64,000 nucleotides of DNA from Penicillus capitatus (GCA_965649825.1 OZ287697.1:1722351-1786350), one strand, 5' to 3'; counted from the first letter of the stretch, positions 36,414 to 59,412 are shown. Notes: a model not told the origin generated them from the sequence alone. Numbers and translations are program-made.

Positions 36414-37547
36414 TCAGGGAATCAATGGTTCTTTGATCGAACGTCGTTCAAGTAACAGCGATGTTAAACGTGTCCAATGCGAAACATAAACGGAATAGTC
36501 CCCGGACTGAAAGCATGGGTCGACGATCAGAAGGAGCGAGTGTAAATCTGTCAGACGAAAAGAGCTGTCGGCAATCCTAAGTCCGCGGCAGCTGACACCG
36601 ATTCTCAGAGTCGGATCGTGTAAACTGACAATCAGTCGATGCCTGCTGCCTGTGAACAGAAGAAAAGACGCTGTTGACTGTACCAACGGAAATGCCAGAT
36701 GGAGCACTTCGAGTTGACCAAAGTACTGAAAACTTGTCCACGGTGCGAGAAATAGATCAGGTCAGAACAGATCTAGATTCGAGGGACAGACTGCGCCAGC
36801 GTACTAAATAGCGTCCTAAAGAGGCAGAAGAGCGATTAGGGATTAGGAAACTGGTTATGAATGACGGACATCACTGACAGGTAACTGATGCGCATTGCGG
36901 ACCATAGTCGTTTACTATCAGCTTGGTCGGCGACGTCGAGGGAAACAGGATCTGATTGCTCCCGTTTCTCAGCAAGAAGCCAGGAAGACTGACTTCGCAG
37001 AGGCCTGCGAGCGCGATCTAGGACGACGACTCGACGGCCGATGTTCAGTGTGACGTCGTCTCTTCAGTCCTGTCAGGGACAACAGCACTCTGCGGAAGCC
37101 CTCGTACGATTCAGCAGTCCCCAGATGCACACCGAGAGAATGCAGCCGAGAGTACGTTTCTGAATGAAAGAGCTGAAGATCGCCGTCTGTCCCGTCGCCG
37201 AAGTAGTCCAGTCGCTCCAGCCGCGTCATTGAGGTCAGACCGGCGAGCCGCCGAGCAACGTCGTGATCTTCTGACGGGAAACAGGCCGAACAAGGGAGCT
37301 CGACGGCGTTTGGAAAAGCGGTCAGCACGTCAGAGACGTGTTCAGGAGGCACCTGTCGAAGCTTGACGGGCAGAGACTTGCAAGCCGCGTCCCATTGTCG
37401 ACACACGCGGCGGTGCTCTTGAAGACCGTCGTGAAGAAGATAGCCGAGTACCTCGTGAAGGAACAAATCCTCGTCGAGCAGAAGGCTAATACAGTTCAGG
37501 TGACTGGACTGCGGTCGCCTTTCGCCGGAAACATCACGTTTTGCCAT
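36414..37547 (-). pseudogene. F-box-like/LRR pseudogene (unit 2 copy of 17357..18992)
   Basis: ORF 36969..37661 matches the 18126..19268 protein up to LTGLKR and then shifts frame through indels. ORF 36414..36707 is a degenerate match to 17357..18148. Confidence 0.8.
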
Positions 37548-38274
37548 GAGGTGCACCGTCGGCTTTGTAGATTGACTGCGACGTGGTTGTCGTTGCTTCA
37601 AGTGTCGGCGGGCTGTTCGACGGCGCCTCTTGCGTACGACAGCTCTGTCGGCGTGTGACACGAGGCGTGGACGTCGCGTGCGCCATGTAATGCGGTCGCG
37701 TTACCGCGATTTGCGATGCGAGTACTAACAGCGCTTGATGTGACTTGAGTTCTCTTAGAAATGCACATCGTGGGCAGTTTGTGTCACACAGAAGGATGGA
37801 CGTTGGGTGAATCAGTTCGTCCACGACAGGCTTTGACCCTTATTACTCAAGGCCCGCTCGGGAGGACAGGTTCGCGACTGGATACGGCGCTTCGCTGTGC
37901 ATTAGCATGGAGACGCTGCCGTCATCGCATTCCTCCCACTATCGGTGCTCCGAAGATGGCGATACTGTTGCCAGAACTGAGACCGATAGTACGTTCTTCC
38001 GGTAAAATCGTCTCCAGACAGACTGCAAAAACAGATGACGAGAACAGGTTAGGCGTGTGAAATCGGACAAGGGAAATGCCAGCGAACTCCAATCCTCCAA
38101 CATCGTCACAGATGCGACCTCAGACTTGGTTGTTCTGAGACAGCAACGGAGGAACTTGTGGATTCACGTTGCACGCACCCGCATGCTGGTTCATAACTGC
38201 TCCAGAAACGCGTTCCTGACCCACTCTGTTTCTCCATCAGAGGCTCAGCTCCATCCACCAAATTCGCTTCCAAG

Positions 38275-41200
38275 ACAGAAGCGTTGTCGCCGCACGGAAG
38301 ACAAGGCAGTCCGCCGGGGACGAAACCTCGTGCCGGCGACGGTCGACGACGCGCCCAGTGCGCACTCACTCGCCGTCGACGCACGACAGGTCTGTGCTCG
38401 AGACTGGGTCGCCTGTTTGCCTCGCCTGTGTAGTCCATTTGCCCGAGTCTCGACTTGTCGACAAAACGAGACGGTGGATATCATCACAGCACGTTGGATA
38501 TTATGTGGACAGAGCGGCAGCATGCTGGAACGTGCTTCCACGGAAGGCCGTCATGTGTGGTCGCTGTCGCGCCAGCGCTGATGACCCCAGTTGCGTCAAG
38601 GGGCACCTACACTATAAAGCCCCTGACTTCGATTTGATCAAGCACACAGCACGAGTCAAAACCTTCTACACTGCGAACAACATGCGAGCGAAGGCTGAAT
38701 CAGTTTGTTCGGCCCTGTTGATCATGAGTACTACCTTCGGCCTCGTCGTCGGATGTGCGTTGACGGCCTCGACGTTGACGCACGCAAGGCATGCACCGAC
38801 ATCATCGCTTTCCGGTGACAGCATGGTTTACTGCTTCGTCACTCACCTGGCTGTTGGTTCTTAACTTCGCAGAACTGGACGACGAGCCTGTTGTGCCCGT
38901 TCCTAGTGCCAAGTCTGTATCGTTCAAACCAACCCTACAGCCTCAAGTACGTCTACCTTCTCTGCACAAGCAACGCGGAGAGGGTCCTATCTCGGCGCCC
39001 AGGGAAGAAGCGACGCGCGGACCCTTCGCCAAGTGAGCCAAGATGGCAAGGCGACAGCAGGTTCGTTCCATTCGCTGTCACGTCGCGCCTCGTAGCTGAC
39101 TGTGCTGTCGCGTTTTCGCTAGAGGTCGCCTGTCGTCTGTCGAAGGCGAGGCGTCGCCGTTATCTGAATGCCAAGACGAGAGAGTGGTTGCTCAACTCGG
39201 CAGTCCTCGACGAGATACAAGACGACCTCCAGCTCATCGTCAACTGTTCTCGACCGGGAGACGTGCTGCTGCTCGACACCACGAAGACAATCCGGCCTCC
39301 TTTACGCACCGTCATCTCATGGCCGCTGACGATCAGCGGCTACGTCCCGGGAGGAGAGCACGACAGGGTCAACACTGCTGCCTCGGAGAAGCGAACCATC
39401 CTCGTCTGTCCGCAGATGAACGAAGGACTGTTCACATTTCGGTAAGCTCAGACTCTATCCGTCCTAATGATGTTAGATGTGTTCGCTCGCAGGACCACTG
39501 ATGTCACTCTGACGGACCTTGTCGTAGAAGGGTGCCTATTCGTCGTTTCTGGCACATCGGAGTCCGTCATCGGCTTCGAAAAGTGTGACCCTAAAGCCAC
39601 CAGGGGACTCACTGGGGGAACCATTCGGCTAGATCGCATCGGATTCAGAGAGAATCGTTTTCTTGGCAGATCAGTTGCCATCCAAGCGAACGCGTCATCC
39701 TGCTCAAAACTGGAGATCGAAGATTTCTACTTCCAGAAGAACACCTGCAATGGAGTCTGCGGTCTTCTTCTCGCCAAAGCGAACAGGCTCCAGAACATCA
39801 CCATCAGACAGAATCGACGAATATCATCGCTCAATGGAGTCAACGATCTGCTTCTGACCGAAGAGAACAGACTTCAGAAACTTTCCATGGAACATTTCCG
39901 ATCGATACCATCCTTATCTTCCAGATCGGTGATCATTTGGGCACCTCCTCGGTCCTCGACATCTGCCGAAAACATCAGTGCTTCGGAGAATAGTTGTGCC
40001 ACAATCGAGGTCGACGGAGGCTCCTTCGGTCTGTCAAACAGCATCTTCAGGAAAAACGCGGCAACCGATGAGGAGGGAGACGACTCCATCAGTGCCTGTA
40101 TCAAGATGAAAGACGCATCTGCTGTCATCCGTGACTGCAGTTTCGAGGAGAACGAAGCAAGTTACGGTGTGGCGATCAATGCTCGAAGATCGAACATCAC
40201 TCTCGAAGATTGTGCATTCCGTGGCAATGTTGCTGGGATGGACGGGACCATCTATCTCCGGAATAGAAGTTCCTTGACGATCGACTCCTGTCGGTTTTCG
40301 CGGAACAGAGCCGAGAAGTCTGGTGGTGCAATCTATGCACAGAATGCCGAACTGAGCGTCACACACTTGACCTGTGTGCAGAACAACGCTACACTGAAGG
40401 GAGGGTGTCTGCACGTGGCCGGGTTCGGCTCAGTGAAGATGACCGACTCTGTCCTGAAAGGAAACAGAGCTCGCTCAGGCGGCGCTCTACATCTCAGAAA
40501 TACATCAGCAGCAATCGACAGCTCGAAGTTTTTATCGAACCGAGCTGAAAAACTGGGAGGAGGAATCCGTTCGATCGGCTCAAACATCACTGCAAATGGA
40601 ATCATAGCTGACGGTAACCACGCTGAATATAGAGGTGGCAGTGTTTCGATCGCTTCAAGATCCAATCTCACCGTGCACGACTCAGTCTTCAAGAACGGCG
40701 CCAGTTCTAGGGGAGGAGCAGTCGAACAGAGTGAGAACTCTGTGGGAAGGTTCGGCAATGTGACCTTCGTGGACAATTTGGTTGATGAGGAAGGAGGCGC
40801 CATCTTTGCGGATAACGCGACAGTGATTATTCATAACGCAAGATTCAGAAATGTTAGATCTGGTACTCAATCGTATCTCTCAGGCCGAGGCGGCTTTCTA
40901 TTCGCGAGGCATCACAGCTCAGTTTTCGTCGAACATGCAACGATGACAAAAGTAACTGCGGGAAATGGCGGGGCGATCTTCTTAGAAGATTCCGTCTGCA
41001 CGGCAAAGCAGCTAAACGTGTCAAAGTGCACTGCAGTATTTGCTGGTGGAGCAGTAGTCGTTGGAAGTTCTGAATTCCTCTGCACAAACTGTCTTTTTGC
41101 TTCGAATACGGTCTCGACTATTGGCGGAGGTGCCATTTATATCACTAAAAACAGACGCCGCAGATCTATTGTCCAATTACAGGAGAGCAAAATAATAAAC

Positions 41201-43266
41201 AATAGTGGGAGATGGGGAGGTGAATCTACTAAATCATGCATTGATGGAGCATCTTTATTGGTTTGTTTCGTAGGGGGTCTTCATGTTTATGACAGCCGAA
41301 AGTGCTTAAAAGACGTATACAAATGCATTGCTGTAGTTATCATTGACACTCAGTTCGAGGGAAACAGTGCCTATGAGGCTGGAGGAGCGATCTTTGCAGA
41401 CCGCTTGGAAAACATCAGATTTCAGTGCAACTCGTCATCCAAGAATGGCAATCTGAAATTCTTGGAAGAAAAAGAATGGAGTTCTTTGAACCGTATTACA
41501 CCCGACACGACTCTCTGTCCTGCGTGGAAAAACAATTCTGCTGGCATCTACGGGGAGGTTGTTGGTACAATGGCCACCATGGCGAAGATGACTGTCGAGT
41601 ACAAGGGAGAGAAAACAGAAGTCTTGACTGGAGAAGGATTCGAAGTTCGAGACTATGTCGGTGGCAACCAGCTGCCAACGCTGTCAGTGGAAATGCTGGA
41701 TGAACTGAAACAGGGTCCGGCGAACGCCAACACGATCGGTCCGGATGGTATGGCTACATTGACAGCATCAGAAGGGTTTCAAGTTGGCAGTTCTTCTCTG
41801 TCTGTGGAAGGACAGACTGCCAACTTTCCTCTTCTGATCGGTTTTGGATTGCCGGGCATCTACAACATGACAATTAGATTCGCGAGGCACGAATGTGCTG
41901 GAGATCATAACAACAGCGCATTTGTCGATCCATTAACCATCACCGTCCATGTGCGAAACTGCACTGTTGGTGAAATGCCCGTCGGTGAGACGAAGATCTG
42001 CAGCAACTGCAGCACCTCTACGTACAACTTCGACCCTGAAGCAGAAGAATGTCAGCCCTGCCCTGAGAACGGGAACTGCAAGACAAGAGTGATCGTTCCG
42101 AATGATGGATACTGGCACGCGTCTCCCTGTTCCGTCAACATTACGAGGTGCCTGACCTCGTATGCATGCAAATTCGACGATCGCGATGAGAGATTGACAA
42201 ACCTGACAAGAGACATGAAGAACTGCAGAATCAACGCTACCACAGTTGAGGAGTATCAGCAAACTCAGTGTGCTGAGGCGAGTGATTGGTCAGCCTTTTG
42301 ATCTTCTGAGTCTTTGTGTTCTGGGATTCAGGGCCACACGGGTCCTCTCTGTGGAGCATGCAACACCTCGTATGGATCCTCCGTGTCTTCCAGATGCGAA
42401 GAATGCCCCACGGCATTCGGCAATGTCATGACGATTTGCTCTGCGACAGTGATCCTACTTATTCTGTCCGGTGTTACGATCAGAGGGACACTGAGTACCG
42501 CTAGCAGCAGACTGGCGATGCTTTCCGGCCATCGAAGAGTTCCCCGCAGTATTCAGCTCAGAGATCTTTCGCTTCCAGCCGAGCCAGAAACGTCTGAGAT
42601 ACAGGCGTCCCAGGAGGAGTCGCCTGCGATCCAAGACACGAACGAATGTCAAGAAAGCCTGACTGTCACCGAAGTGACCCTGGGACAGTGGAGAGCGGTC
42701 GAGATGTTTAAAGTATGAAGCTATGTGGCATTCGTGAGACTGACAGTCTTCGTTGCAGATAATGTTGAACTACGTTCAGATGACAGTGCTGATCGCATCA
42801 CTGGATGTCGGATGGGCAGTTCCTATACTTGTCATGGCAGAGATATCAGGTCCGCATCTGCGAAAGCTGACAGAATGTTTCCACCCTTCATCGTTGTGTG
42901 CTGCACAGAGTTCTTTGGAGGATTCGCGGTGGACAGTACCCGACGTTCTGTTGTTTGTTTGGGCGGACACGACCAGTCACTGCATCCAACCGCATGGGCC
43001 TTTGTCGTGAGTGTCTGTCTTGTTCCTGCATGTGTGGCGTTGGTGTTCATCGTGTTCTGGATCACAGTTGCACCATTTCATCAGATCCGTCGTCCGGTCC
43101 GCTACGTCATGCAGAGATCTCTGCTGTCTCTGATGGCTCTTTGGCATATTACTTCTGTTCCGGTGATCAAGACGACTCTGAGCACAGTCCTTTGCGTCGA
43201 CGCCTACAATGTTCTGCATGCGACGCCGGAGAAGGATGATGAGACGACCATAGATGGGACGAAAGG
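38275..43266. repeat. Recent segmental duplication, copy at 59006..64000
   Basis: Offsets are 20731 and 20734 bp. ORF translations are identical outside 40832..41765, and looser similarity extends left to about 37460/58194. Confidence 0.92.
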
Positions 43267-44005
43267 AGAGATGGTCAGCTACTGGGCAGTTGACACAAGT
43301 CTGAAGTGCTTCGAAGAGGATCACCGGAGGCTGGTGGTTCTGATCATCTCGTTCGTCTCCCTCGTCTACGGTGGACTCCTGATCGCCTTCGTCGCCATCC
43401 TTGGATTCTCAGAAGACCGGCTGAACGACACGGACAGCTGGATCTACCAGTCTGTGGGATTCCTCTACCGCAGCTACGGACACGGGAGGCGTCGCTACTG
43501 GGAGCTTGCAATTGTGGCAAGGAAAGCAGGGATTGCTTTCCTGGTGTTCTGCAGCCATCGCTTCGACAGCGTGCTGCCCATCTTCGGAGCTGCCGTCTTC
43601 CTGACGCTTGCCGTGAGTGTACAGATTGTGGCGATGCCCTACAGGCAGAGTTTCGACGACCTGAACAAGATCGACACATTCTCTCTTTTCGTGTCGCTTC
43701 TGACGACACTTCTTGCAGCCATGATGAAGAGTGAGAGTCCTACCATTGATGCTGGTCGCTCAGCTATCTCATTTCTGTTTGTTTTCCTCAACATCACGGC
43801 TCTCGCCGTTCTGCTCTCGTTTCTTTTTCGTTACTCCGTTGCCTACGTTAGACTCTCCCTGAGAGAAAGCGGAACGAGAGTGGATTCTGATGCCACTGCG
43901 CTGCATGTGCTGGGGATCTGGTTGTCTTGTATGACTCGGAATCTGGCTGTTCTTCTTGGGTTTTCCAAGCACGATGACAAGTCGAGCATCTGTTCCGGCA
44001 TGTGA
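38682..44005 (+). CDS. Pmp-like beta-helix / Cys-rich / multi-TM protein (unit 2 copy), multi-exon
   Basis: Start MRAKAESVCSALLIMSTTFGLVVGC. Introns 38815-38872, 38948-39003 and 39061-39123 restore the frame into the N-cap. Main exonic ORFs are 39467..42301, 42314..42718 and 42725..44005. Confidence 0.87.
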
Positions 44006-45827
44006 TCTTTCTTTTTTGTCCGTTCCACATACATCATTCTTTTGTTTTCAAGCTGAGTGGAAAGCGGAGCCTTTCTAACTCATGACGAACTTTACACCCC
44101 TGCAGCCCTTCGTACCTTCATATCTAATCCTAGTGTGTGAGGGCTGTAGCGAAGATATGGCCGAGTGTCACTCTTCGAGATATGACGATTGTTGTTTAAT
44201 TGACTTGACGAAAAGATGACGCACGTACGCCGATCGCGTCGGCATCGAATGAACAGAGCTCTGAGGTTACACAGGCGAAGAGTGTGCATGGTGCGACCAA
44301 GAATTTGTCCAACACACGGTGCTGACAATCCGAAGTATTCGACGAAACGACTTCCATGGCCGAGACCACAGACAGACGATTGATTCTTCAGATGACGCTT
44401 GCATTGAAGCCGACGGCCGCTCAAGGACCCTCGAACAGAACGGACACGTCAGCTGCAATCGCGATTCTATGTTCTCCACCACAGCCAACCGCGCAATGAA
44501 AAACTCATCTTTCTCCGCTCGTGGCGGCGGGAAATGCTGTTTAGAGAGCGATCGGCGAGAAAACCTCAAATGGAGAAGACGTCTGGGCTGGTTTCGTTCT
44601 CACGCACATTCTAAAAGCAGGCGATAACAATCCAGCGCGGCGAAAGAACGTGCCATCGGTTTTTCATGGGGGATGAAGGCGATACGAGAGTCGATGCATG
44701 ATCGTTCGCACAAACCTTCAGAACCTGTCGATGTCGCCGTCTTCTGCGCGTTATCACGTGAAGGTCGAAGCGCTGGGTACCGAATGTCCTTAACGCCTAC
44801 AGGAGACGAGCCCTTGGGAAGACTTTCGACCAAGGCGTGCCCTATAGCAGCGAAGGTCAACTATTCTGGACGTGAGGAAATCGACACCGTGTGGAGCATG
44901 GGAATGCAAGAAACATGAAAAACCAGCTAACAACACCAAATCGAGTAACTTACCGCATTCGGCGACCAAACTCAAGCTGCCGAAGTGAAACGCAAACCCA
45001 AACAGTCGTGTGTTTTCAAGACGCTCCAAAGAAGGTTGTCGCTTTTCAAGAAGCAAAGATCACTCTTTCTTCCAGATTTGAGAATAGGTCGTTGACGGGG
45101 GACACGCAGAGGTGACGGGTGTCGATGTGACAAAAGGGCTCGCTGAGTTTTTGGAACGAGTGCTGCAACGAATGGTGCGGAGACGGTTGATCCAGAGCCT
45201 CTAGTGCCTGGAGCCTAGAGGACTAAAGGCTAAAGTAGTGTCAAGCCGAGGATCCAGTGATTTGATTGATGTGTCCAAGAAGACAATGAAATGACCTGTT
45301 GATACAAAAGATCCTAGACTATGTGGATAATGCCCTTTTAACAAAACACTGCAACCTCGTTTTTAAGACAATTCATCGCGATGGGATCACAGTAGACTGG
45401 GCAAAACTTGTGTCGGAGCCACTCGAGTCCTCCGATTACCAGAAGATGGTAGAGAAGTGCTGCTTAAGGTTTTAGAATACTTCCTTTTTCCCTCCCAAAG
45501 GCGACCATAGAAACGCCGCCCACCAACTGTGGATCAGACCTATTCTCATGTCCTGAGTGCGTGTCAGATGTCGATCTTGATCTGTAACAGCGCAAAAAAC
45601 GACAGCGGGGCCAACCAAGAAGGTCGTTAGCAAAAGCGACGACGCGGTAGTCATCCGTCGGTCTGTGCGGTTAGTTCTTCGCCGTCGAGGAACGTTTAAC
45701 CGCTTGTTGGATTGTGAGTTTGGTTATCGGCTGTTCTGCGCTCAATTGTTGACTTTTCTGTGCACTGACTTGCTATGAACTTTGGTTGCAGTACTAGCGA
45801 GGCCCTTTGCGGGGGTCCTCGATCTAT

Positions 45828-47598: not shown

Positions 47599-47777
47599 TG
47601 TCAGACTAAATGAGCACAATGAAGGCATCCCGACGGCATAAGAGAAGTCGCATCAGAACCTACTACATGTCACATCAAAACCCTAGCACTATAAAAGGGG
47701 GACAATTGCGTTGTTTACGTCATTCTGTTTTAAAAGTCTTCCGCTAATGCGTGTGTTTGTTCACCTACGACGCGACA
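47599..47777 (+). repeat. 5' LTR of the Gypsy element
   Basis: TGTCAGAC...GCGACA, with TATAAAA at 47690. I counted 7 substitutions versus the 3' LTR (about 96% identity). Confidence 0.95.
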
Positions 47778-47789
47778 TGGTTTCGGAGC
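47778..47789 (+). promoter_or_regulatory. Primer-binding site TGGTTTCGGAGC (initiator-Met-tRNA-like)
   Basis: It abuts the 5' LTR and differs at two positions from the plant tRNA-iMet PBS TGGTATCAGAGC. Confidence 0.85.
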
Positions 47790-47800
47790 ATCGATCCAAG

Positions 47801-48154
47801 ATGCGACGTTGTTTCTATGTTCTGGCAGCCCTACTTCTATTCGGGCTCGGTGGAGTTGGAGGTCAGGCGGAGGCTAAATCCACCCTGGACCGGAAGTTGA
47901 AGATGGACGACGAGATCAACTTTCAAGATCTCCTGGAGGCGATTAAAAACAATCAAGACGCAACGGAGAACTTACAAGAGGTTGTTGACAATATTGTGGA
48001 GATCGTATCCGTTCTGGCGGCAGACGCTGCGGCCGCTAAGGCGGCAAAGGAGGAAGCCCAGGGTTTCGATGTCGAGCTGGAATTCACATCGGAAACGTGG
48101 CATTGCGTCAAGGAATGTCTCCGTCTTTTTTTCGAGGATGCTATGAGCTCATAG
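47801..48154 (+). CDS. Retroelement ORF1: signal-peptide-like N-terminus plus acidic coiled-coil-like segment
   Basis: MRRCFYVLAALLLFGLGGVGGQA-EAKS. It overlaps ORF2, which lies in the -1 frame, across T TTT TTC (48127..48133). Confidence 0.7.
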   Translation: MRRCFYVLAALLLFGLGGVGGQAEAKSTLDRKLKMDDEINFQDLLEAIKNNQDATENLQEVVDNIVEIVSVLAADAAAAKAAKEEAQGFDVELEFTSETWHCVKECLRLFFEDAMSS

Positions 48155-49488
48155 TCGGCATCGTGGGTCGATTGGGCATAGCGTGGAATCAAGGAGACTT
48201 TGTTACAAAGTCTCCGTTGACCTTCATGATATACAACACGGTATGCACCATACCGGGTGCCGTTCGAAATGCTGTGTGGTTCGTGGTCCAAGTATGGACT
48301 GCGTACAACGCCCTACGTAGCTGGTTGAGGGGAAGCCCTAAACTTGAGAAGGGCGAAAAGATGAACGACTCGATTGAAAGTTACGAGGAACTGACGCAAG
48401 TCCGTCGGTATCGAGAAGAAAGACTCCAAGACTTCGTCGACAGACTTGTCACGAAGTGGAAGACCCTCACACCCAAGATCTCAGACGCAAGATTCCTGAG
48501 AGTGTTGAAACAACATTTTCCCCGAGAATTCCTGCAAGGCCTGCACGATCTCAATCTTGACGAAGTGAAGGTGAATACAGTGATCGAAAAGTGGAACAAT
48601 TTCTGCAAGTGGACAGCCCCTCCGGCGAACAGAGCAGCTCCCCGGGCAACGCAGCCCACGGCAGCGAGAGTGCAACCAGTCAGAAGGGATGCGAGACAAA
48701 ACCCGCAGCAGGGACAGCAGCAGGGACAGCAGCAGGGACGACAAGACGAGAGGAGGTGCTACAGATGCAATCAGCCAGGGCACTTGTTTGCCCAGTGCCC
48801 TTTGAATGCCCCGGGTCGCTATAACCGAAGGGCAGTTCAGGAAGTTAATGTACCAGAAGGCTACGAGTTGACACCTGCCCCATACAACGCCCAGTGGGAG
48901 CAAGAGGGACGATGCGATCGAGAGCCACCGTCGCCGTGTGCACAGTGCGGCGAGCGCCATTGGACTAGCCATTGTCCGAGTCGTCAGCCAAGTTCGAGCT
49001 CCCATGCAGAAGCAGAGGCACCGAGACAGGTCTTTCACGACGAAGGGTCGGACACCGAAGAGAGCACTCGTCGCACCGAGAGCGTGAGCGTTTTCTCGAT
49101 TGCAAAGACAGGGACTCCCTTTATTGCGAAGAAGATCCACATCACGTTCCAGTTCACGAACAGGGACAAGAAGGTTCAGCCGGTGAAGGCGTTGGTTGAC
49201 ACCGGTAGCTGCGCAAATGTCGTCTCATTCTCGGCGCTTCAGAAGTTGGGATACGCTAAGACCGACCTCATACATGACGCAAAAGTACCTTCAGCATTAG
49301 CCGGGTTCGCAGGCGAGGACGCCAGAACACTTGGAGGCATCTTCCTCAAGGTGCGCCTGGGAAGCGTCACCCGCGATATACCGTTCATCGTGATGAACGA
49401 CGTCCTGACGCACTGCATCATTGGTATGCCGGCGATTGACGCATTTGACCTCCACATCCGTGGACGGGCACGTGCAGTGTCTTTTTAG
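48097..49488 (+). CDS. gag: Retroelement ORF2: hydrophobic segment, Gag (two zinc knuckles) and aspartic protease
   Basis: Motifs are YEELTQVRRYREERLQDFVDRL (gag-like), CYRCNQPGHLFAQC, CAQCGERHWTSHC and ALVDTGS...IIGMPAI (protease). Confidence 0.9.
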   Translation: MALRQGMSPSFFRGCYELIVGIVGRLGIAWNQGDFVTKSPLTFMIYNTVCTIPGAVRNAVWFVVQVWTAYNALRSWLRGSPKLEKGEKMNDSIESYEELTQVRRYREERLQDFVDRLVTKWKTLTPKISDARFLRVLKQHFPREFLQGLHDLNLDEVKVNTVIEKWNNFCKWTAPPANRAAPRATQPTAARVQPVRRDARQNPQQGQQQGQQQGRQDERRCYRCNQPGHLFAQCPLNAPGRYNRRAVQEVNVPEGYELTPAPYNAQWEQEGRCDREPPSPCAQCGERHWTSHCPSRQPSSSSHAEAEAPRQVFHDEGSDTEESTRRTESVSVFSIAKTGTPFIAKKIHITFQFTNRDKKVQPVKALVDTGSCANVVSFSALQKLGYAKTDLIHDAKVPSALAGFAGEDARTLGGIFLKVRLGSVTRDIPFIVMNDVLTHCIIGMPAIDAFDLHIRGRARAVSF

Positions 49489-52330
49489 AACATCCTGCCG
49501 AGGAGGGCGACTCTGCAGGATTCCGCGTGGTACAGTTGTGGGAGACGGAGAAGGGAATCCGCCCTTTTTGTAGACAGAATCTCATCAAGTTCCCGTTAGG
49601 CAAGACCAAGTTTGTCCCACCGCGTGAGTGGGTCAGTTACAATTTTCCTTGGGCCGTTCGTGGGGATCTGTCGTCTGTGTCTTTTCATTGCTCTCTGAAC
49701 AGATGTCCTTTTCTTGCGTTTGTGACCGTCTCTGACTCGGGACAGTTTCGTCTGAACATCTACAACACATCGAACGAGGCTCAAGTTCTGCTAGGGAGCA
49801 CCTTTGCATGCAACTTTTGGTATTCCGGTCGGATGCGGTGCAAGTTTTTACCCCTCTGGAATAAAGGGGATGGCGAGGATCGAGCAGTCAAGGCCGTGTT
49901 TTCAGTCAGTGGTGATATGTTTTCCGAGTTCCCCGAAGTTTTTGATGATGGGACCTACTGCGTGACGCCTGCGATGAAGGCTTTGCGCGTTGACATCCGA
50001 GAGTGCCGTCTGAAAGGTGATCCGACGTTCATGGGCGAGCGTACCTGTCCGAAGATCGACCACCTAGTCCCCGAGCAGCGCATTCGAGAGGAGATAGATT
50101 CCTTTTTGCGAAAAGGCTTCATCGAGCGTGTGAAGTCGAGTGACGAGGGTTTCCTCACGCCTATCTTCTTCTTGCCGAAGAAGGATGGAAAGAAGATAAG
50201 GACACTCAATAACTACCGCAAGCTTAACGCGATGTGTGACTTTTCGTCGGCGACATTCGTCGACGCCATGAGGACGATGCGGTCCATACCGAGGATCTGG
50301 AAACACTTCAGCAAGCTGGATCTGGCGAACGCTTTTTTCAGTGTGGGGTTGAGCCGCGAAACGTCGAAACTCTTCGGGTTCAACATCTTCAACGAGACGT
50401 ACGTGTGGAGGGTGATCCCCCAAGGTTTCGGGTGGAGCCCTATTTGGTTCGTCGAACGAGTGAAGGACATTCTGCACAAGCTCCCCGTCGTTGTATACGC
50501 TGACGACGTGCTCGTTGGAGCCGATTCGGAGGCTGAGCACAACCGAATTCTACGGTTGGTGCTGCAGAGGTTCGAGAGGTTCGGTCTGCGTTTGAACAAG
50601 GACAAAGTTATCATCAATGTTCCCGAAGTTGACTTTCTCGGCTTCCGCGTCAAAGGAGGCGGTTTCAACCTGAAGTGTTACATGGAAGAGAAAGCGACCA
50701 AGACACCGAAGCTTGAACACTACAAGCAACTAGAGAAGACGATCGGTGCCCTCAACTTTTGCCGGGCGCATGTCCCGAATCTGAGCAAGAAGATGGATAT
50801 GCTTCACTCGGCCAAACAGAGAGCCCTGAGGTGTCCAGCCGACTGCGATGAAGCATGGTGGAAGGCGATCAACGAAAAGGTCAGAGAGATATGGGTAGAC
50901 GTAGTGCGAAGCGGCGTCGAACTCAGTCTCGGCGGGTCATTCGACTCGTTTGAGCTCTATGTCGACTGGAGCGGCCCGCATCGCGGATACGTCCTATTCG
51001 GCAAGTGCGATGCCGCGAGGGAAAAGCGCATCGTTGCCGTGGGATCTGCGAAGGACCCGATCCCCCACCAGAGTTCCTTTCTAGGCGAGATTCGGGCAGT
51101 GAAGTGGGCTCTTCAACAGACGACACAGTTTCGAGGAGCCATCAAGACGAAGACATACGTCGACAACAAGGTGGTGGTCGATGGCCTGAACAAGGGGATT
51201 GCGGCGTTCTGCGATGACCGAAGGTGTGCTCGAGTGTTTGCCTTTATATGTGAGAACGAAGGAAACGTGATGTTCTCCTATTTACCTGGAAACCTGAACC
51301 AGATAGCCGACCAGCTTTCCCGATTAGACTCGGGTGGACTTACGCAACAGCCCTTAGACAAGGCGATCATGGCGATTGACCGCCCCGCGGAACAGGAGAT
51401 CGAACGCAGGATACGTTCCGCCCATTTCGGACACTGGGGATACCTGACGACGCTCCAGAACCTGCTCCTCGAGTCGGAGAGGTGGCCAAACATGGAGCGG
51501 GACGTACGCAACTTCGTGTCGAGCTGTCCGAACTGCGCCTTCAACGGCGAAGAGCAAAGGAGGGATGTCCCGAGCACCGAAATATCTCGCAGAATCGGCG
51601 AGAGAGTGTCCATGGATCACTGTGGGCCATTTTTCGACGGATCGCATATCCTCGTAATCGTGGACGACGCGACAAAATGGGTAGAGGCTCTGAGAACCCC
51701 AGGAACTGGAGCCGTGCACGCCATGAGAGCGTTGGATCAATGGCAAGCAAAGCACGGAAGGATCGAGCTGCTTTGCACGGATAATGCAAGCGCTTGGAAC
51801 TCAGACACCTTCCGAAGATGGGCAGCAAGCCGACGCATCGACACTAGGAGAAGTCCGAGTTATCACCACCAGGCCAACGGATTGGCAGAGCGCACCATCA
51901 AGACGCTGTGCGAGCGAATCAGGCGCTTCATGAATGGGTCGACGAGGGCGTGGCCCAAAGCGATACAAGGAGCCGTAGACGCCATCAACACATCGTGGAG
52001 TTCAGTGACTAAGACCACGCCGCAGTCTCTCATGCTAGGCATTGATCGCAACGGCGCATTGCTGGATGACGAAACAAGCCGAAAAGCTTGGGAAGATGCG
52101 TGGAGAAGCGCTCAGCTCGCCAAGACGTACAAGCACGAGCGATTCAAGTGGAAACACCCGCGGCTGTCGAAGCCACTGCGTGTAGGCAATCGGGTGCTGA
52201 TGAAGAATTACCACCGGTCGAATCACCCGCTCGGAAAGCTGGGCCCGAAGTGGATCGGTCCCTTTATGATCGAAGAGCAGAGATCGGAATCGACCTGGAT
52301 CGTGCGAGAGGGACGAGGCTTACCGCCTGT
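49449..52330 (+). CDS. pol: Retroelement pol (RT, RNase H, integrase), interrupted at 52330; last 13 codons at 55998..56037
   Basis: RT motifs NNYRKLN, KLDLANAF, PQGFGWSP and YADD; RNase H-like LYVDWSG...GEIRAV; integrase HFGHWG...CPNC, MDHCG, TDNASAW, NGLAERTI; GPY/F motif KWIGPF. The frame is open from 49449, -1 relative to ORF2. Confidence 0.95.
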
Positions 52331-54057
52331 TGTCGCGCGGAGGCGCCGAACGAAACGATAACAAACAGCGGAAGTCTTACAGTGTTCGAAGCAAGGTCTA
52401 CAAAGACTCAGATTGTCCATTAAATACTTGCGCGATGACGCGACTTGACAAGGCAGGTGAATCACCCTAGCCTCAGAACCAGAGAAAATGGCCTTGGGTG
52501 ATTCAACCAAGACCCCCCAGGATATGGCCTCCTCAAAAACGAGGCAGTGTCATATCGCTCGGCGACACCACGCTTCCCGCCAAACTCCGAAAAACTGCAA
52601 GCAAGCCCCCACGAAAACAACAGAAGGAAATCAGTCTATGCCCGAGGTGAATCGTCGCAGCGCCGAGAAAATGGTCCATCCCGAAGATGATGATGCTTCT
52701 GTGTTTGGTTCCCCCTCTCTCTGCTGCGCATCCGATATCGTCGGATCCACTGACTCGACCGCATTAATCCGCGCTTGCGGACAGTCCTTGGCCAGATGCC
52801 CCTTGCATCGGCACACATAACATATCCGACCGCGCTTGATGGCACCTCCGTCATCATCTGCCGCGTCGGTTGCTCTCGCCCGTCGTCGGCGCGGGAACCG
52901 CCCAATGTCGTGCAAAACGCGCTTCATCTGATGCAACGTCTTCACGGTTCTCCGTCCTTCTGCCGGTCTTGTCGTCATCAACTCAGCCGTCCTTTCGCCG
53001 TTCGTCCGTACGGTTTCCTGCAGAGTCTTCACCTCGGCGGCCAAAGACTGTAGACATGGCACCAAATCAGGTGCCGAAATAAACTTTTTCTTCGCCTCTG
53101 TGAAGGCGGCATCAGTCTCTCTAAGCTTCTCATGGAGAGAGGAGGCTTCCACGCGTGCCTCGTTTGCATTTCTCTGTGCCTCAACGATACCTCGTTCTGC
53201 CTCGGAAAGCTCTTGTTGAAGCTTTTGTTTCTGCTCCTGCAGATTCTCATTTCCGACCATCAAACACTCCATCTCGTCGCTGGCTTCACTAGCTTCCCAT
53301 TCGGCCTCACTGGCTCGTCGTTGTGCACATTGCAGCTCCCGTTTCAATCGTTCATTCTCCTTGTGCAAACGTCCCGTCGTCACTTGCAAATCCCGTCTTT
53401 CTTGTAGTCGCGGACAAACGTATCTGATGAAGTCGACCAGTTCGCCCGCGTCAAACAAAAAACTCTCAGGGCGCTGGCCGCCCACCACGTTAACCCGACC
53501 CCACGTCCACACCTTATGACAACGAAGCGCACCAGGGTACAGACCCTCCTCCTCCTCCAATTCTCTGAGCAAACTCGGTCCGTAGACAGTGTTGCCATAA
53601 TACCCGGTGAAACCTTCCCCTCCTTGACCTTGCTCTGCTCTTCTTTCTCGTCGCCCTCGACTCATCCTTGCTCCTGACTCTTGAAATTCCTAGGTATGTC
53701 TAGAAAATGTCTAGACAGGACTCGACTTCCCCGAAGTAAGCGCTTTAGTGCACACAGCACGCGCGCAACGTCACTGAGACGGAGTTCAAACTGAGGAGCG
53801 TTATCTCAGCTCCGAAACCACGTCGCGCGGAGGCGCCGAACGAAACGATAACAAACAGCGGAAGTCTTACAGTGTTCGAAGCAAGGTCTACAAAGACTCA
53901 GATTGTCCATTAAATACTTGCGCGATGACGCGACTTGACAAGGCAGGTGAATCACCCTAGCCTCAGAACCAGAGAAAATGGCCTTGGGTGATTCAACCAA
54001 GACCCCCCAGGATATGGCCTCCTCAAAAACGAGGCAGTGTCACATCGCTCGGCGACA
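52331..54057 (-). mobile_element. Non-autonomous LTR element A (1727 bp), antisense inside pol
   Basis: The 237-bp LTRs 52331..52567 and 53821..54057 show 2 differences. The PBS is at 53820..53809 and a PPT-like GGCGGGAAGCGTGG precedes the 3' LTR. The TSD CCTGT is at 52326-30 and 54058-62. Confidence 0.92.
52631..53665 (-). CDS. Element A single ORF: unknown N-domain, coiled coil, CCHC zinc knuckle
   Basis: A 344-aa intact ORF with a heptad-rich ERLKRELQ...EARVEASSL segment, CYVCRCKGHLAKDC and a C-terminal FTSGID. Confidence 0.85.
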   Translation of the reverse strand: MSRGRRERRAEQGQGGEGFTGYYGNTVYGPSLLRELEEEEGLYPGALRCHKVWTWGRVNVVGGQRPESFLFDAGELVDFIRYVCPRLQERRDLQVTTGRLHKENERLKRELQCAQRRASEAEWEASEASDEMECLMVGNENLQEQKQKLQQELSEAERGIVEAQRNANEARVEASSLHEKLRETDAAFTEAKKKFISAPDLVPCLQSLAAEVKTLQETVRTNGERTAELMTTRPAEGRRTVKTLHQMKRVLHDIGRFPRRRRARATDAADDDGGAIKRGRICYVCRCKGHLAKDCPQARINAVESVDPTISDAQQREGEPNTEASSSSGWTIFSALRRFTSGID

Positions 54058-54176
54058 CCTGTTGTTAAACGTTGCTTCAGAAGACGCAGTAAAGTTCTTA
54101 AAGAAAGTTCGTGCGCAGAAGTTACAAATCTAATCGAATCTCTTTTTACTTATACGCATGATGTGATGTTACCACC

Positions 54177-55921
54177 TGTCGGCAAGATGGCGTTTTGCTG
54201 ATGTGACTGTCTTGTTTTCGATGGGTCCACATTCAGGGGGGGGCTTGGTTGAATCACCTAAGGCCATTTTCTTTGGTTCTGAGGCTAGGGTGATTCACCT
54301 GCCTAGGAACGTCGCGTCACCGCGCACATACATAAGGACACATTCTGAACACTCAGGACCTTGCTCCAAACAGTTTGTAAGTCTTCCGCTGTGTTAATCT
54401 TTCGTCCGGCCCGATCGCCGACAGTGGTTTCGGAGCGTGTATACGTTCCTCAGTTGGGGCTCCGTCTTTGTGACGTTGCGTGGCTGCTCTGTGCATTGCG
54501 CTCTCCTACGTGGAGAACGAGTCCTGTCTAGGCGACTAGACGCACCAAGGAAAGCCCCAGGGACGGCAGTTGAGGGATGAGTCAAGCACGAATAGAATGG
54601 ACAAGGGAGCGAGGTCGAGAGGAGTGTTATATCTACGAGACATACAAGAACGTCGCGAGCATGCTCGCGCATATGGGTCAAGACGATGGCCTCAGCCCTA
54701 GCCTTGCGGGAACACCGGTGCTGGCAGGCTCGGTGCTGGCGGGCATCTGCAATGAGCAGCCTCATTTGCAGTACGTGGTGGCGGACGGGGACATAGCTGA
54801 TTTCCTTAGTTATGTTTGTCCGCGACTGCAAGAAAGACGAGACCTGCTAGGGACGACGGGACGGTTGCGCGAGGAACGAGAGCGGCTGCGCCAGCGGGTG
54901 GCGACCGTCGAGGCCGAAAAGGAACAGCTGCAACAGCAGCTGCGGCGTGAACAGCGAAGGATATCCGAGGCAACGGCAGAAAACGATCGGCTGTCAGGCG
55001 ACAACACGAAGCTGCGACATGACATTTCCAAGGCAGAACGAGGCATCGTCGAGGCACGACGAGACGCAAACGAGGCACGCGTAGCAGCCTCCTCTCTACA
55101 GAAGAAGCTCGAAGAGACAGAGACCGCCTTCGGAGAGGCAAAGAAACTTTGGTGTCTAGTCTTCGGTCGTTGTCCACAGAGGTGAAGGCACTGCATGAGG
55201 AAGTCCGGACAAGTGGCGAAAAGACAATCGAAGCGGTGGTGAGGAGACCACCAGAGGAACGACGGAATGGGAAGACTCTACGCCAGATGAGGAGAGTGCT
55301 GCATGACATCGGACGGTATCCGCGGCGACATCGAAGAGGGAGGGCAGCCGGCGCAGCTGACGATGGCGGGGAAGCCACGAAGCGCGGCCGAGTCTGCTAC
55401 AGCTGCCGGTGCAAGGGGCACCTGGCGAAGAACTGTCCGCGGGCGCGGACAGACACGGTTGCGTCAGCGGAGCCGACGGGATCGGATACGCAGCCGAGAT
55501 CCGACATGGCGACAGAGTTGAATACAGCATCAGCGTACTCAGGGCTCAAGATCTTGTCCTTTTTCCGGCGGAATTTCACCTCGGGCATCGACTGAACATT
55601 AGTAATTGTGTTTGGGGGGCCTTGCATCTGTTTTCGGAGTTGGCGGGAAGCGTGGTGTCGGCAAGATTGAGGTGCTGATGTGACTGTCTTGTGTGGGAGG
55701 GGGCCACCTTGCTCTGGGACACTCGGGGTCGTGTCATTTGAGGTTTTGGGCCGAGAAGAGGCCTTTTTTATGGTCCTGGGGCAGTACTGAGTCACCTGCC
55801 TAGACATGTCGCATCACAACGAGGGTATTTAATGGGACAATCCGAACCATGTTTACCTTGCTCCAAACAGTTTGTAAAGTCTTCCGCTGTGTTAATCTTT
55901 CGTCCGGCCCGATCGCCGACA
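54177..55921 (+). mobile_element. Non-autonomous LTR element B (1745 bp), same family as A
   Basis: LTRs are 54177..54423 and 55656..55921 (TGTCGGCAAG...CGCCGACA), the PBS is at 54425..54436, and the TSD CCACC is at 54172-76 and 55922-26. Confidence 0.9.
54577..55595 (+). pseudogene. Element B ORF, homolog of the element A ORF, broken by a frameshifting deletion near 55147
   Basis: ORFs 54577..55185 and 55149..55595 together align to the A protein (YVCPRLQERRDL, CYSCRCKGHLAKNC, FTSGID). About 19 nt present in A are missing. Confidence 0.8.
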
Positions 55922-55997
55922 CCACCGTGCTGAGCACGGGACGATGTTCAGTAATAATCTTCATTACTTGCCTTCATCATCCCATCTCGACACCTGT

Positions 55998-56037
55998 TCT
56001 GGTTCATTCCTCCCAAATAAAGCCCTATCTAACATAA
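55998..56037 (+). CDS. pol: Displaced 3' end of the host integrase
   Basis: Removing 52331..55997 joins CCT GT to T CTG GTT CAT... in frame and restores ...REGRGLPPVLVHSSQIKPYLT-stop. Confidence 0.88.
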
Positions 56038-56142
56038 AATCACCTGGCTGGAACGCTTTTATACTTTCCCTCAAGTCGTGCACATCGTCTCCATGTGGCC
56101 TCCTATCTCTTCGGAGTTTGCGCTCGGAAGGTGATGAGCCCA

Positions 56143-56321
56143 TGTCAGACTAAATGAGCACAATGAAGGTATCCCGACGGCATAAGGGAAGTCACATCAG
56201 AACCTACTACATGTCACATCAAAACCCTAGCACTATAAAAGGGTGACAATTGCGTTGTTTACGTCATTCCGTTTTAAAAATCTTCCGCTAATGCGTGTGT
56301 TTGTTCACCAACGACGCGACA
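56143..56321 (+). repeat. 3' LTR of the Gypsy element
   Basis: A 179-bp near-copy of 47599..47777. Confidence 0.95.
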
Positions 56322-56410: not shown

Positions 56411-57006
56411 GTGTGGCAAAACGGATATTGGTTGTTTCTGTGGGACGTTGTCGTCCGTATTACATGTCTCTTGACGGACGGCCTAGAAATGGCGTGTAAG
56501 GAAAGAGGCAGGTTGTGTCTATCATCCCTAAAGAGTGACTTGGCGATGAGCACAATAGCACAAATCTCACTCTTTGAAGGCAATGGTACGTGATGATCAT
56601 CAATCGTCAACCAGACAACAGACACGACCGTCAAGCGCTAACAATTCAGTAGACTCACTATTTGACAAACAGACATGATCGTTGATAGAGGCCAAGAGAG
56701 GGACTGTGTCGCGATGGACTTGCTTGCTTTGTTCTTACGGTTAATCTATTCCATTGCTTCGAAGGCTCTCACACATGGACATTTGCTGAATAGTATTCAT
56801 TCTTCGCTATTCGCCTGTTGCGTCGATCTGATTTTAAGATCTCTGAGACGAGGGATTATCCCTTCACCTAAAAGGCCAAGAACTCCGAAGTCGTGTCCGT
56901 AGCGAAATTCGGTTCCTGAAGCTGCGCCAGCAGAATAAGCTAGCTACGTTCGAGAACCGTCGAGTTTATCTTCTTCCGACAAATTGAAGTAATTGCATCC
57001 GTCAGG

Positions 57007-58284
57007 TTAGTCAGCGACGTCGAGGGAAAGGTAATCTGATTGCTTCCGTTTCTCAACAAGAAGCCAGGAAGATTGACTTCGCAGAGGCCATCGAGCTCTG
57101 TCAGCGTGCATGGTCCAGGTTGATGACTCGACGTCCGATCTCAGTGTTACATCAAGTCTCTTCAGTCCTGTCAAGGACAACAGCACACTGCGGAAGCCCT
57201 CGCACGCTTCAGCAGTCCCCAGATGCACACCGAGAGAATGCAGCCGAGAGTACGTTTCTGAATGGAAGAGCTGAAGATCGCCGCCGTCTGTCCCGTCGCC
57301 GAAGTAGTCCAGTCGCTCCAGCCGCGTCATTGAGGTCAGACCGGCGAGCCGCCGGGCAACGTCGAGATCTTCGGACGGAAAACTGGTTGAACAAGAGAGC
57401 TCGACGGCGTTTGGAAAAGCGGTCATTAAGTCAGAGACGTGTTCGGAAGACACCTGTCTAAGCTTGACGGGCAGAGACTTGCAAGTTGCGTCCCTTTGTC
57501 GACACACGCGGCGGTACTCTTGAATGCCATCGTCGAGAAGATAGCCGAGTACTTTATGAAGGTGTGAAGAACTTCCTCCGACACTTTCTCCCTGCACCTC
57601 TCTTTCGACGTCCTTGGCCTGGACGACGCGGATTTCCCCCTCGTCTTGACCGGGGGGCGGAGGAGGAGCATTGTCGCCGGAGTCGTTCCCGTGTTGGCTC
57701 AGCTCACAAGCGCGGCGGAAGTCTTGAAATTGGATGAGGATGGGCGATAGTTCGAAGGCCACACAGACAGCGTTTCAGCAAAGGGCGACTTGTTACAACT
57801 GAGAATAGACAGCGAATGTTTTGCAAGGTATAAACAGAATGTATGCGATTCACCGATGACAAAGGAACTTGATCGTCAAACGAAAGATGTCTTTATGTGT
57901 CGAAGCCTTGCTTAAATACTCAGACCCTGATGTGACGACAGGAAGAGTCGATGAACTTCAAGAGTGAGTTTGCAATAAGATTCTCAATTAGACTAGGGAA
58001 TTCAGTATGAACTTCTAGAAGTTTCCTAGGAACTTCTCAGGAACTCACTCCCAGTCATCACGACTTGTCTGCGACTCAGCCGTGATGGTTACTTTTGCAT
58101 AGCCAAAGACCCGACAAGTGCTAGGTGACAGAAATGTCACTATTATATGGACGTCCCATCACCTCTTCGTCAGAATTGCGCCATTCTTTCACAGAAGGAA
58201 CCAATCCTCGTCCAGCAAGAGGCCAATGCAATTCCAGTGACTGGACTGCGGTCGCCTTTCGCCGGAAACATCACGTTTTGCCAT
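57007..58284 (-). pseudogene. F-box-like/LRR pseudogene (unit 3 copy) split by a solo LTR
   Basis: The N-terminus MAKRDVSG...DEDWFL is at 58284..58194 and continues HKVLGYLLDDGIQEYRR at 57562..57007. Similarity is lost beyond about 57007. Confidence 0.85.
57563..58193. mobile_element. Solo LTR, 631 bp, unrelated to the nest LTRs
   Basis: TGTGAAGA...TCTTTCACA termini, with the 5-bp TSD GAAGG at 57558-62 and 58194-98. The empty site TGAAGGAAC is visible in the paralogs at about 18901 and 37457. Confidence 0.9.
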
Positions 58285-59412
58285 GAGGTGCACCGTCGGC
58301 TTGGTAGATTGACTGAGACGTGGTTGTCGTCGCCAGATTGTCGTCGCGCTGTTCGACGGCGCCTCTTGCGTACGACGGCTCTGTCGGCGTGTGATACGAG
58401 GCGTGGACGTCGCGTGCGCCATGTAATGCGGTCGCGTTACCGCGATTTGCGATGCGAGTACTAACAGCGCTTGATGTGACTCGAGTTTTCTTAGAAATAC
58501 ACATCGAGGGCAGTTTGTGTCACACAGAAGGATGGACGTTGGGTGAATCAGTTCGCCCACGACAGGCTTTGACCCCTACCACTCAAGGCCCGCTCGGGAG
58601 GACAGGTTCGCGACTGGATACGGCGCTTCGCTGTGCATTAGCATGGAGACGCTGCCGTCATCGCATTCCTCCCACTATCGTGCTCCGAAGATGGCGGTAC
58701 TGTTGCCAGAACTGAGACCGATAGTACGTTCTTCCGGTAGAATCGTCTCCAGACAGACTGCAAAAACAGATGACGAGAACAGGTTAGGCGTATGAAATCG
58801 GACAAGGGAAATGCCAGCGAACTCCAATCCTCCAACATCGTCACAGATGCGACCTCAAACTTGGTTGTTCTGAGACAGCAACGGAGGAACTTGTGGATTC
58901 ACGTTGCAAGCACCCGCATGCTGGTTCATAACTGCTCCAGAAACGCGTTCCTGACCCACTCTGTTTCTCCATCAGAGGCTCAGCCCCACCAAACACGCTT
59001 CCAACACAGAAGCGTTGTCGCCGCACGGAAGACAAGGCAGTCCGCCGGGGACGAAACCTCGTGCCGGCGACGGTCGACGACGCGCCCAGTGCGCACTCAC
59101 TCGCCGTCGACGCACGACAGGTCTGTGCTCGAGACTGGGTCGCCTGTTTGCCTCGCCTGTGTAGTCCATTTGCCCGAGTCTCGACTTGTCGACAAAACGA
59201 GACGGTGGATATCATCACAGCACGTTGGATATTATGTGGACAGAGCGGCAGCATGCTGGAACGTGCTTCCACGGAAGGCCGTCATGTGTGGTCGCTGTCG
59301 CGCCAGCGCTGATGACCCCAGTTGCGTCAAGGGGCACCTACACTATAAAGCCCCTGACTTCGATTTGATCAAGCACACAGCACGAGTCAAAACCTTCTAC
59401 ACTGCGAACAAC

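Follow-up and report, generated by a model that had tools for sequence, protein, structure and literature searches.

A probable programmed -1 frameshift signal between protease and polymerase in a compact family of Ty3/Gypsy-like LTR retrotransposons

How the polymerase of a retroelement is translated when its gene lies one base behind the frame that ends with the protease is the question raised by a locus in Penicillus capitatus DNA. The window, by which the whole analysed stretch of 64,000 nucleotides (nt) is meant (GCA_965649825.1 OZ287697.1:1722351-1786350), contains a long terminal repeat (LTR) retrotransposon, whose own features lie on the plus strand; ORFs on the minus strand are marked (-). 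Its Gag and protease (PR) are encoded upstream of a stop codon at 49488, and pol is open in the -1 frame. The site at 49479-49488 is very probably a programmed -1 ribosomal frameshift signal of a compact family of Ty3/Gypsy-like LTR retrotransposons; the slippage of the ribosome itself, the slipping transfer RNA (tRNA) or tRNAs and the efficiency are what we infer from the compared sequences. The layout, as read from these sequences, is of the "0/-1" type, in which Gag and PR share a frame, pol is read from the -1 frame and the shift comes where the PR-containing frame ends, a description that implies no membership of the Retroviridae. The window copy departs from this layout by one break in the gag frame.

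The second open reading frame (ORF) of the element, ORF2, ends in the window with GCA GTG TCT TTT TAG, and overlaps pol by 40 nt. The shift site and stop (49479-49488) are read as G UCU UUU UAG in the zero frame and as GUC UUU UUA G in the -1 frame. They are followed by a spacer of 3 nt (49489-49491), which places the next feature 6 nt from the last sense codon. This feature is a putative stimulatory stem-loop at 49492-49521, with arms at 49492-49502 and 49511-49521 and a loop at 49503-49510. It begins 3 nt past the stop and consists of 7 bp, a 1x1 mismatch, 3 bp and an 8-nt loop. The minimum free energy of the hairpin is -15.5 kcal/mol, compared with -8.8 +/- 2.3 kcal/mol for shuffled sequences (z = -2.96), and 2 of 200 shuffles fold equally well. 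The preliminary description of this DNA had recorded the TCT TTT TAG terminus, the -1 relation of pol and the hairpin three nt past the stop, all of which are present in the sequence, and had proposed a programmed -1 shift after the protease at this stop-abutting site. The comparison with related elements, and not the window alone, is the reason to regard the PR/pol junction as more than chance; the frames, the sites and the covarying stem of the relatives support the proposed shift.

The relatives' DNA was collected as ten loci found by a Pol protein search, to which an eleventh (L012) was added by an exhaustive search with the N-terminal domain of Pol. Nine of them (L001-L007, L009 and L012) are referred to as intact relatives; L010 is a decayed copy, and L008 is the closest relative and belongs to the same subfamily as the window copy. 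The nine intact relatives, which except for L012 share 45-81% whole-Pol identity with the window, come from ERZ26696514, ERZ23500384, Logan SRR20820735 and JGI 3300015263, four assemblies besides that of the window and five in all. The window contig itself has a coverage of 13x (ctg340394_13x_l, ENA assembly ERZ25074695). In the Pol protein search the family is small, with members at 45-81% identity, followed by a gap and then by ordinary Gypsy-type polyproteins at 20-31%; the window Pol is 75-82% identical to the relatives' Pol over about 960 residues. The most distant locus, L012, shares 23% identity with the window within the N-terminal domain. Two family members are named, both from Caulerpa lentillifera (EukProt set), and Pol-alignment scans of JGI metagenome contigs and IMG/VR returned zero relatives.

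Each of the nine intact relatives has one gag-PR ORF, and in these copies as in the window pol comes next in the -1 frame, overlapping the PR-containing frame by 13-148 nt. The alignment of other copies, which the preliminary description had suggested as a check, yielded PR and reverse transcriptase (RT) in one frame in none of them. The sequence TCT TTT TAG is invariant in the window, L001-L003, L009 and the decayed L010, though the flanking codons vary. The remaining relatives end in TCT TTT TGA (L004), AAA AAA TGA (L006), AAA AAT TAA (L007), TCA AAC TGA (L005) and AAA AAC TAG (L012). In each case, then, the final sense codon is prone to slippage and follows a base identical to its own first base (U UUU, A AAA, A AAU or A AAC), and in every copy it can re-pair fully or nearly so after a backward slip of one base. 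The stop directly adjoins the slip codon in every copy, with UAG, UGA and UAA all represented. The shortest overlaps are 13 nt (L005) and 16 nt (L012), and therefore the frame change is confined to these last codons. A canonical X XXY YYZ heptamer occurs in L006 (A AAA AAA), L007 (A AAA AAU) and L012 (A AAA AAC), and is lacking in the window, L001-L005 and L009, where UCU UUU or UCA AAC is found instead.

These comparisons bear directly on the doubt, raised in the preliminary description, that the frame change at 49479-49488 is a homopolymer assembly error, and likewise on the rival reading that it is a one-base defect of this copy, in either case with PR and pol really in one frame. The short T run at the site, the 13x coverage and the other defects of the copy speak in favour of such an error. 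Against it, the identical site and frame relation recur in five further copies on other contigs, another assembly included, which makes six copies with the T run, and five more diverged copies have equivalent sites with different slip motifs. Moreover, the hairpin covaries, and recently inserted relatives keep the arrangement. The doubt has accordingly been dropped, and an error or defect at this site is regarded as extremely improbable.

The stem-loop is present in all intact relatives, in which it starts 3-4 nt past the stop. In all intact copies the stem begins 6-7 nt after the last sense codon, which is within the 5-9 nt expected for frameshift stimulators. The folding energies of the relatives' stem-loops range from -14.1 to -23 kcal/mol, with -33.9 kcal/mol in L012, and the z values of intact copies from -2.0 to -5.2. 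In the decayed L010 the stem-loop (-10.1 kcal/mol, z -0.14) has lost its advantage over shuffles. In an alignment of eight copies, 92% of the stem cells are paired and double-sided changes are found in 8 of the 11 pairs, a result reached by none of 500 shuffles; in slid controls, with the partner moved by 1-3 columns, pairing falls to 36-50%. This fixed geometry, in which a slip codon is followed by a stop, 3 nt and a covarying stem, is what a -1 frameshift requires, and for that reason we commit to this mechanism. A different explanation of the T or A runs seen at the site in most copies (T5, A6, A7) would be slippage of the transcribing polymerase on the homopolymer, which would put PR and pol in frame in some transcripts. 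Transcriptional slippage, however, is usually associated with longer runs than those at the site. L005, with a run of only three A (TCA AAC TGA), nonetheless has the same design, and transcriptional slippage needs no downstream covarying stem at frameshift distance, so that this explanation appears very improbable.

The production of Pol apart from Gag-PR, by a spliced or subgenomic mRNA, internal initiation or termination-reinitiation, with the hairpin serving, for example, packaging or dimerisation, is a further alternative. It draws on the observation that, among solved sequences, foamy-virus RT and integrase come closest. Foamy viruses make Pol from a separate spliced mRNA. It also draws on L006, which has a pol-frame ATG overlapping the gag-PR stop. 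In that copy the A run and TGA form ATGA at 6001-6004, and it is the only copy with such an arrangement; termination-reinitiation at the L006 ATGA is conceivable. The window and most relatives, however, have no AUG at or near the junction. The pol frame of the window contains no AUG before the conserved N-terminal domain of Pol, and the first one lies inside this domain; an independent AUG start would therefore lose about 115 conserved residues. Furthermore, a slip-prone codon has been kept at the stop through four motif changes, with a constant distance of 6 nt to a covarying stem, and the other mechanisms need neither. Internal initiation and reinitiation were set aside since a junction AUG is found in L006 only, and separate synthesis of Pol as a whole is considered unlikely.

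In the proposed frameshift, Gag and protease would be translated as one protein from an ATG at the boundary of the LTR and the primer binding site (PBS). At the last sense codon, UUU in the window, most ribosomes would meet the stop and release Gag-PR. A fraction would be stalled by the stem-loop starting 6 nt past the slip codon, and the stalled ribosomes would slip back by one base on the U run and enter pol. The product would be a Gag-PR-Pol fusion with the N-terminal beta domain, RT, RNase H and integrase. The slip itself may be pictured in two ways. In a two-tRNA variant the last sense codon would occupy the A site, by homology with the heptamers of L007 and L012; in a one-tRNA variant, the one put forward in the preliminary description, the tRNA on the last sense codon would slip alone from the P site with the stop in the A site. 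That the stop always adjoins the slip codon argues that it plays a part, and this fits both variants alike. For sites of the window type (UCU UUU and stop) it may be tentatively suggested, as a possibility, that the slip is a termination-coupled, single-tRNA slip of peptidyl-tRNA-Phe, in which the stop would be obligatory and the hairpin 3 nt beyond it would be stimulatory. Such a stop-dependent slip would explain why the stop abuts the slip codon through four motif changes and all three stops, and also why the P-site codon of a two-tRNA slip need not re-pair.

The pattern known from umbraviruses offers a parallel for this type of site. The umbravirus site G_GAU_UUU, with UAG 3 nt after it, is characterized by poor P-site re-pairing, and the nearby stop matters (PMC5009743). 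In pea enation mosaic virus RNA 2, which is of the umbravirus type, an A-site UUU preceded by U, poor P-site re-pairing and a contributing stop are shared with the window site. The virus differs in being a plant RNA virus with the stop one codon further on, and the comparison concerns the mechanism only.

The preliminary description had gone further and proposed a double frameshift, with a three-tier expression of ORF1, Gag-PR and Pol. The octamer GTCTTTTT does occur at both junctions (48123-48130 and 49479-49486), as had been stated there. It is not rare in the window, which contains five matches where 2.8 are expected; 15 of 100 shuffles attain that number. The two shifts, from ORF1 to ORF2 and from PR to pol, would belong to the window's subfamily. 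In support of them, GTCTTTTT lies within the ORF1/ORF2 overlap with ORF2 in the -1 frame of ORF1, ORF2 and pol are stop-free across about 1450 codons, and the 5' region of the subfamily could be compared in two copies only, the window and L008. Yet in L008, the only other copy of the subfamily (93% nt identity in the region), the sequences homologous to ORF1 and ORF2 are read in the same frame despite the presence of the octamer. One continuous gag-PR frame runs from the ATG at the LTR/PBS boundary to the protease stop in L001-L004 and L009. L006 and L007 likewise have a single gag-PR ORF, with a stop between that ORF and the boundary ATG. In L001-L003 and L009 the octamer is confined to the PR/pol junction, and a second conserved frame change between gag and protease is absent in all intact relatives. 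The window copy, moreover, has diverged LTRs, an unmatched target duplication and an insertion in pol. The three-tier scheme has therefore been abandoned; two programmed shifts in the subfamily are judged quite improbable, and the first junction is best read, from these frames, as one copy-specific frame break, by mutation or by assembly error in the 13x contig.

A single shift placed after the protease resembles the arrangement of the alpharetrovirus Rous sarcoma virus (RSV), for which the "0/-1" pattern is described (PMC1224870) and in which ribosomes shift close to the end of gag, aided by a structured stimulator (PMC5009743). As in RSV, the protease is read in the frame of Gag and pol in the -1 frame (PMC1224870), the shift is located at the very end of the upstream frame, where unshifted ribosomes terminate at once, and a structured stimulator follows, with a possible long-range pseudoknot arm (PMC5009743) that in the window is only suggestive. 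Unlike RSV, the window family consists of env-less LTR retrotransposons with very short LTRs and a distantly related Pol, and shift sites of the window type lack a canonical heptamer. Beta- and deltaretroviruses also have a -1 shift between protease and polymerase (PMC1224870, PMC7075266). They possess, however, a second conserved shift between gag and pro, while gag and PR are in one frame in the window family. In standard Ty3/Gypsy elements pol is organized as PR-RT-RNase H-INT (PMC2238898) and the recoding site precedes PR, whereas PR of the window family lies upstream of the site. The animal Ty3/Gypsy elements and other LTR retrotransposons whose survey is summarised in PMC5009743 are alike in element class and shift direction, and some members of the window family (L006, L007 and L012) have heptanucleotide sites. 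The literature search found no usable described Gypsy element with a shift after PR, a 2003 survey of recoding in LTR retrotransposons being outside its reach, and on retrotransposons of the Bryopsidales it found nothing usable. The Dictyostelium element Skipper is said to be of the Gypsy type with a separately recoded protease, which would set a precedent for recoding around PR in such elements; this is an unconfirmed lead, a further literature search having found nothing more. Skipper has been described with two ORFs and with PR inside ORF2 (PMC5006619).

The RNA element at the junction may be larger than the hairpin, as judged from codon conservation in the aligned copies. Between 49485 and about 49634, five close copies show a synonymous-codon identity of 0.7-0.83, compared with about 0.5 beyond. 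Peaks of synonymous conservation are observed at the stem-loop, at about 49545-49589 and at about 49605-49634. A pseudoknot between the loop and a downstream sequence is possible: CGCCCT at 49560-49565, 38 nt past the stem, could pair with the loop bases 49504-49509 (AGGGCG). Complementarity is kept in nine of nine sequences for three pairs, and two pairs show one double-sided change each. Further long-range helices proposed by RNAalifold displayed no covariation and are not relied on. No Rfam family matched anywhere in the window.

Several points weigh against the interpretation of the site as a programmed frameshift signal. The window-type UCU UUU is non-canonical, and a two-tRNA slip on it leaves the P-site serine tRNA poorly paired; the missing heptamer lowers the case for a canonical signal in this type of site, and not the case for its working by -1 slippage. 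A simple hairpin with -15 kcal/mol would stimulate shifting only modestly. The possible pseudoknot varies too little among the copies, and its covariation is not significant, being reached by 33 of 500 shuffles, and the conserved protein domain could partly account for the raised conservation downstream. Not every member of the wider group has this layout, since the distant relative P0095 is a single PR-Pol protein. Finally, the window copy is degenerate, with a break in the gag frame, an insertion in pol, LTRs 4% apart and unmatched flanks, and with the shift signal intact; the signal in this very copy may for that reason be a relic.

The element is bounded by a 5' LTR (47599-47777; 179 nt, TGTCAG...GCGACA) and a 3' LTR (56143-56321), which form a direct repeat with 96% identity. 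The PBS, TGGTTTCGGAGC, lies at 47778-47789, directly 3' of the 5' LTR. This 12-mer is found identically right after the 5' LTR in the window, L001-L003 and L009, and it is also present in L004, L006 and L007. The polypurine-side sequence (56113-56142), GGAGTTTGCGCTCGGAAGGTGATGAGCCCA, is nearly identical at the equivalent position in L002, L003 and L009. The relatives' LTRs are 88-113 nt long, and the first 30 nt or so of the window LTR resemble theirs. L002, L003 and L009 are 5.3-kb elements with LTRs of 88-93 nt (TGTCAG...CTGACA) and perfect 5-bp target duplications, and the members of their LTR pairs (3387-3479 and 8646-8738 in L002; 3406-3497 and 8664-8755 in L003; 6833-6920 and 12071-12158 in L009) are 100% identical. 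Elements of this layout have therefore transposed recently. Compared with the LTRs of these three copies, that of the window starts alike and has twice the length. At the window LTRs, unlike in these three copies, no matching 5-bp flanks were found. The structural hallmarks of Ty3/Gypsy-like elements are thus present, namely TG...CA LTR ends, a PBS, a polypurine side and 5-bp duplications (the last in L002, L003 and L009), as is the domain order Gag(CCHC)-PR-RT-RNase H-IN, with integrase after RT.

The gag-PR gene (47777-49488) contains one frame change and zero stops in the window copy and reads as ORF1, the Gag N-terminus (frame open 47687-48154, ATG at 47777), and ORF2 (frame open 48040-49488), which is -1 relative to ORF1 and encodes a CCHC knuckle and the protease. 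There is no leader between LTR and gag. The gag start codon spans the LTR/PBS boundary, being composed of the final A of the LTR and the TG of TGGTTTCGGAGC, and is in frame with ORF1. The boundary ATG is located at 47777 in the window, 3653 in L001, 3479 in L002, 3497 in L003, 6920 in L009 and 51 in L004. With the start codon in this position the PBS is coding, and every Gag consequently begins M-V-S-E. ORF1 of the window starts with the same four residues as the relatives' Gag and is the true Gag N-terminus of its subfamily. In this N-terminus (47777-48154) a hydrophobic stretch resembling a signal peptide precedes a probable coiled coil. No similarity was found between ORF1 and the N-terminal part, about 390 residues long, of the other relatives' Gag; nowhere is the family more variable than in this N-terminal region of Gag. 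ORF2 residues 110-482 align to the C-terminal 340 or so residues of the relatives' gag-PR. The CCHC zinc knuckle, nucleocapsid-like, lies at 48754-48801 (Pfam zf-CCHC, ORF2 residues 239-254); the match (E 7e-4, 20.0 bits) is just under the 20.8 cut-off, and an equally weak match is found in the relatives' gag-PR. The retropepsin-type aspartic protease (D-T-G ... I-I-G-M-P) at 49177-49434 matches Pfam Asp_protease_2 over the cut-off (ORF2 residues 380-464; E 2e-5, 25.6 bits). From the end of this domain to the stop, 17-20 residues were counted in all eight sequences considered (the window and L001-L007).

The pol gene (49449-56037), entered at the shift site, is -1 relative to ORF2 and retains an intact 970-codon ORF (49449-52361), with one insertion and with zero stops or frame changes within these 970 codons. 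Past the shift site and ahead of RT, a family-conserved, all-beta N-terminal domain is located at 49578-49823, corresponding to Pol residues of about 32-113 counted from 49485. RT (YADD) follows at 50175-50651 (Pfam RVT_1, E 7e-25), then a weak RNase H-like domain at 51033-51323 (Pfam RVT_3, E 1.6e-3, under the cut-off) and integrase at 51396-51866, composed of an H2C2 zinc-binding part (51396-51539; Integrase_H2C2, E 5e-8) and a core (51636-51866; rve, E 5e-7). The relatives' proteins P0003, P0096 and P0098 also match RVT_3. The RNase H matches this type and not the RT_RNaseH type usual in Gypsy elements. Among sequences in the PDB, those closest to RT are the foamy-virus PR-RT (E 6.5e-25 to 3.1e-24), followed by Ty3 (E 1.5e-20), and the one closest to integrase is the PFV (prototype foamy virus) integrase (E 4e-18); a caulimovirus-type polyprotein is also among the best solved-structure matches of Pol. 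The sequence matches suggest that the family may branch deep among Ortervirales-like elements.

The N-terminal beta domain gave no sequence-level match to Pfam and PDB profiles. In the AlphaFold2 (AF2) model the predicted confidence score (pLDDT) is 47 overall and 54-81 within this domain. All of the top 50 Foldseek PDB hits for the domain are dUTPase or dCTP deaminase, at E values of 0.04-0.25 obtained with a low-confidence model, and the Asp of its D-S-G stretch is not invariant. The modelled domain is thus possibly dUTPase-like in fold. In distant relatives it forms the N-terminus of Pol proteins that have no PR. In two other distant relatives, P0095 (1810 aa) and P0107 (1301 aa), the domain is internal. 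PR of P0095 (749-841) stands directly before it, PR and Pol being one protein, which may represent an in-frame version of the layout in the wider group.

Near the 3' end of pol about 3.6 kb of unrelated repeated DNA is inserted in the window copy. Because of this insertion the last 15 or so codons of the pol family lie further downstream, and the corresponding residues of the relatives' Pol match just upstream of the window's polypurine side. Copies of a unit of about 1.5 kb, in both direct and inverted orientation, make up the inserted DNA; the unit has terminal direct repeats of 238 nt that are 99.6% identical. The insert contains ORFs of 344 aa (52631-53665, (-)) and 202 aa (54577-55185), neither with a Pfam match. 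It is possibly a small nested repeat element.

The retrotransposon is flanked by a segmental duplication (35921-44062 and 56411-64000), 96% identical over 5.8 kb with a period of about 20.7 kb, of which a third copy (20124-25196) is 77-79% identical. ORFs of about 945 aa with Chlamydia-PMP/beta-helix repeats lie in the duplication copies (39467-42301 and 60198-63035) and also at 5042-8146 (-). Host-type ORFs at 11023-12384, 12829-13551 and 9867-10997 (-) encode DCD (development and cell death), F-box/LRR and RCC1-repeat proteins. The flanks of the relatives contain HPAT, NACHT and beta-helix genes. Taken with the Caulerpa lentillifera relatives, such genes suggest that the host is a green alga, which they agree with but do not prove. 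No tRNA genes were found in the window.

Programmed -1 frameshifting in retroelements is already well known, and in kind the signal is not new. The new elements are the production of the protease together with Gag, Pol alone being dependent on the shift, which is unusual for a Ty3/Gypsy-like element, and the occurrence within one family of a fixed site-stop-spacer-stem design with swapped slip motifs, canonical and non-canonical sites included. There is also a consequence for annotation, as prokaryote-style gene callers split these elements into two genes. In the Caulerpa lentillifera protein P0008 (EukProt, 1320 aa) Gag and the first part of PR are joined to Pol, with about 90 residues missing around the junction; at least in this one eukaryotic gene model, the predictor seems to have crossed the shift by means of a spurious intron. 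The series of variants bears on one- versus two-tRNA slippage and on the role of the adjacent stop. If the stop-dependent single-tRNA slip suggested for window-type sites were true, the family would hold a natural eukaryotic series of stop-dependent -1 sites beside canonical heptamers.

Summarizing, this compact family (5.3 kb, LTRs 88-113 nt) has been recently active in the sampled genomes, which are probably those of siphonous green algae, and the placement of PR with Gag changes the ratio of protease to polymerase that is expected in the particle.

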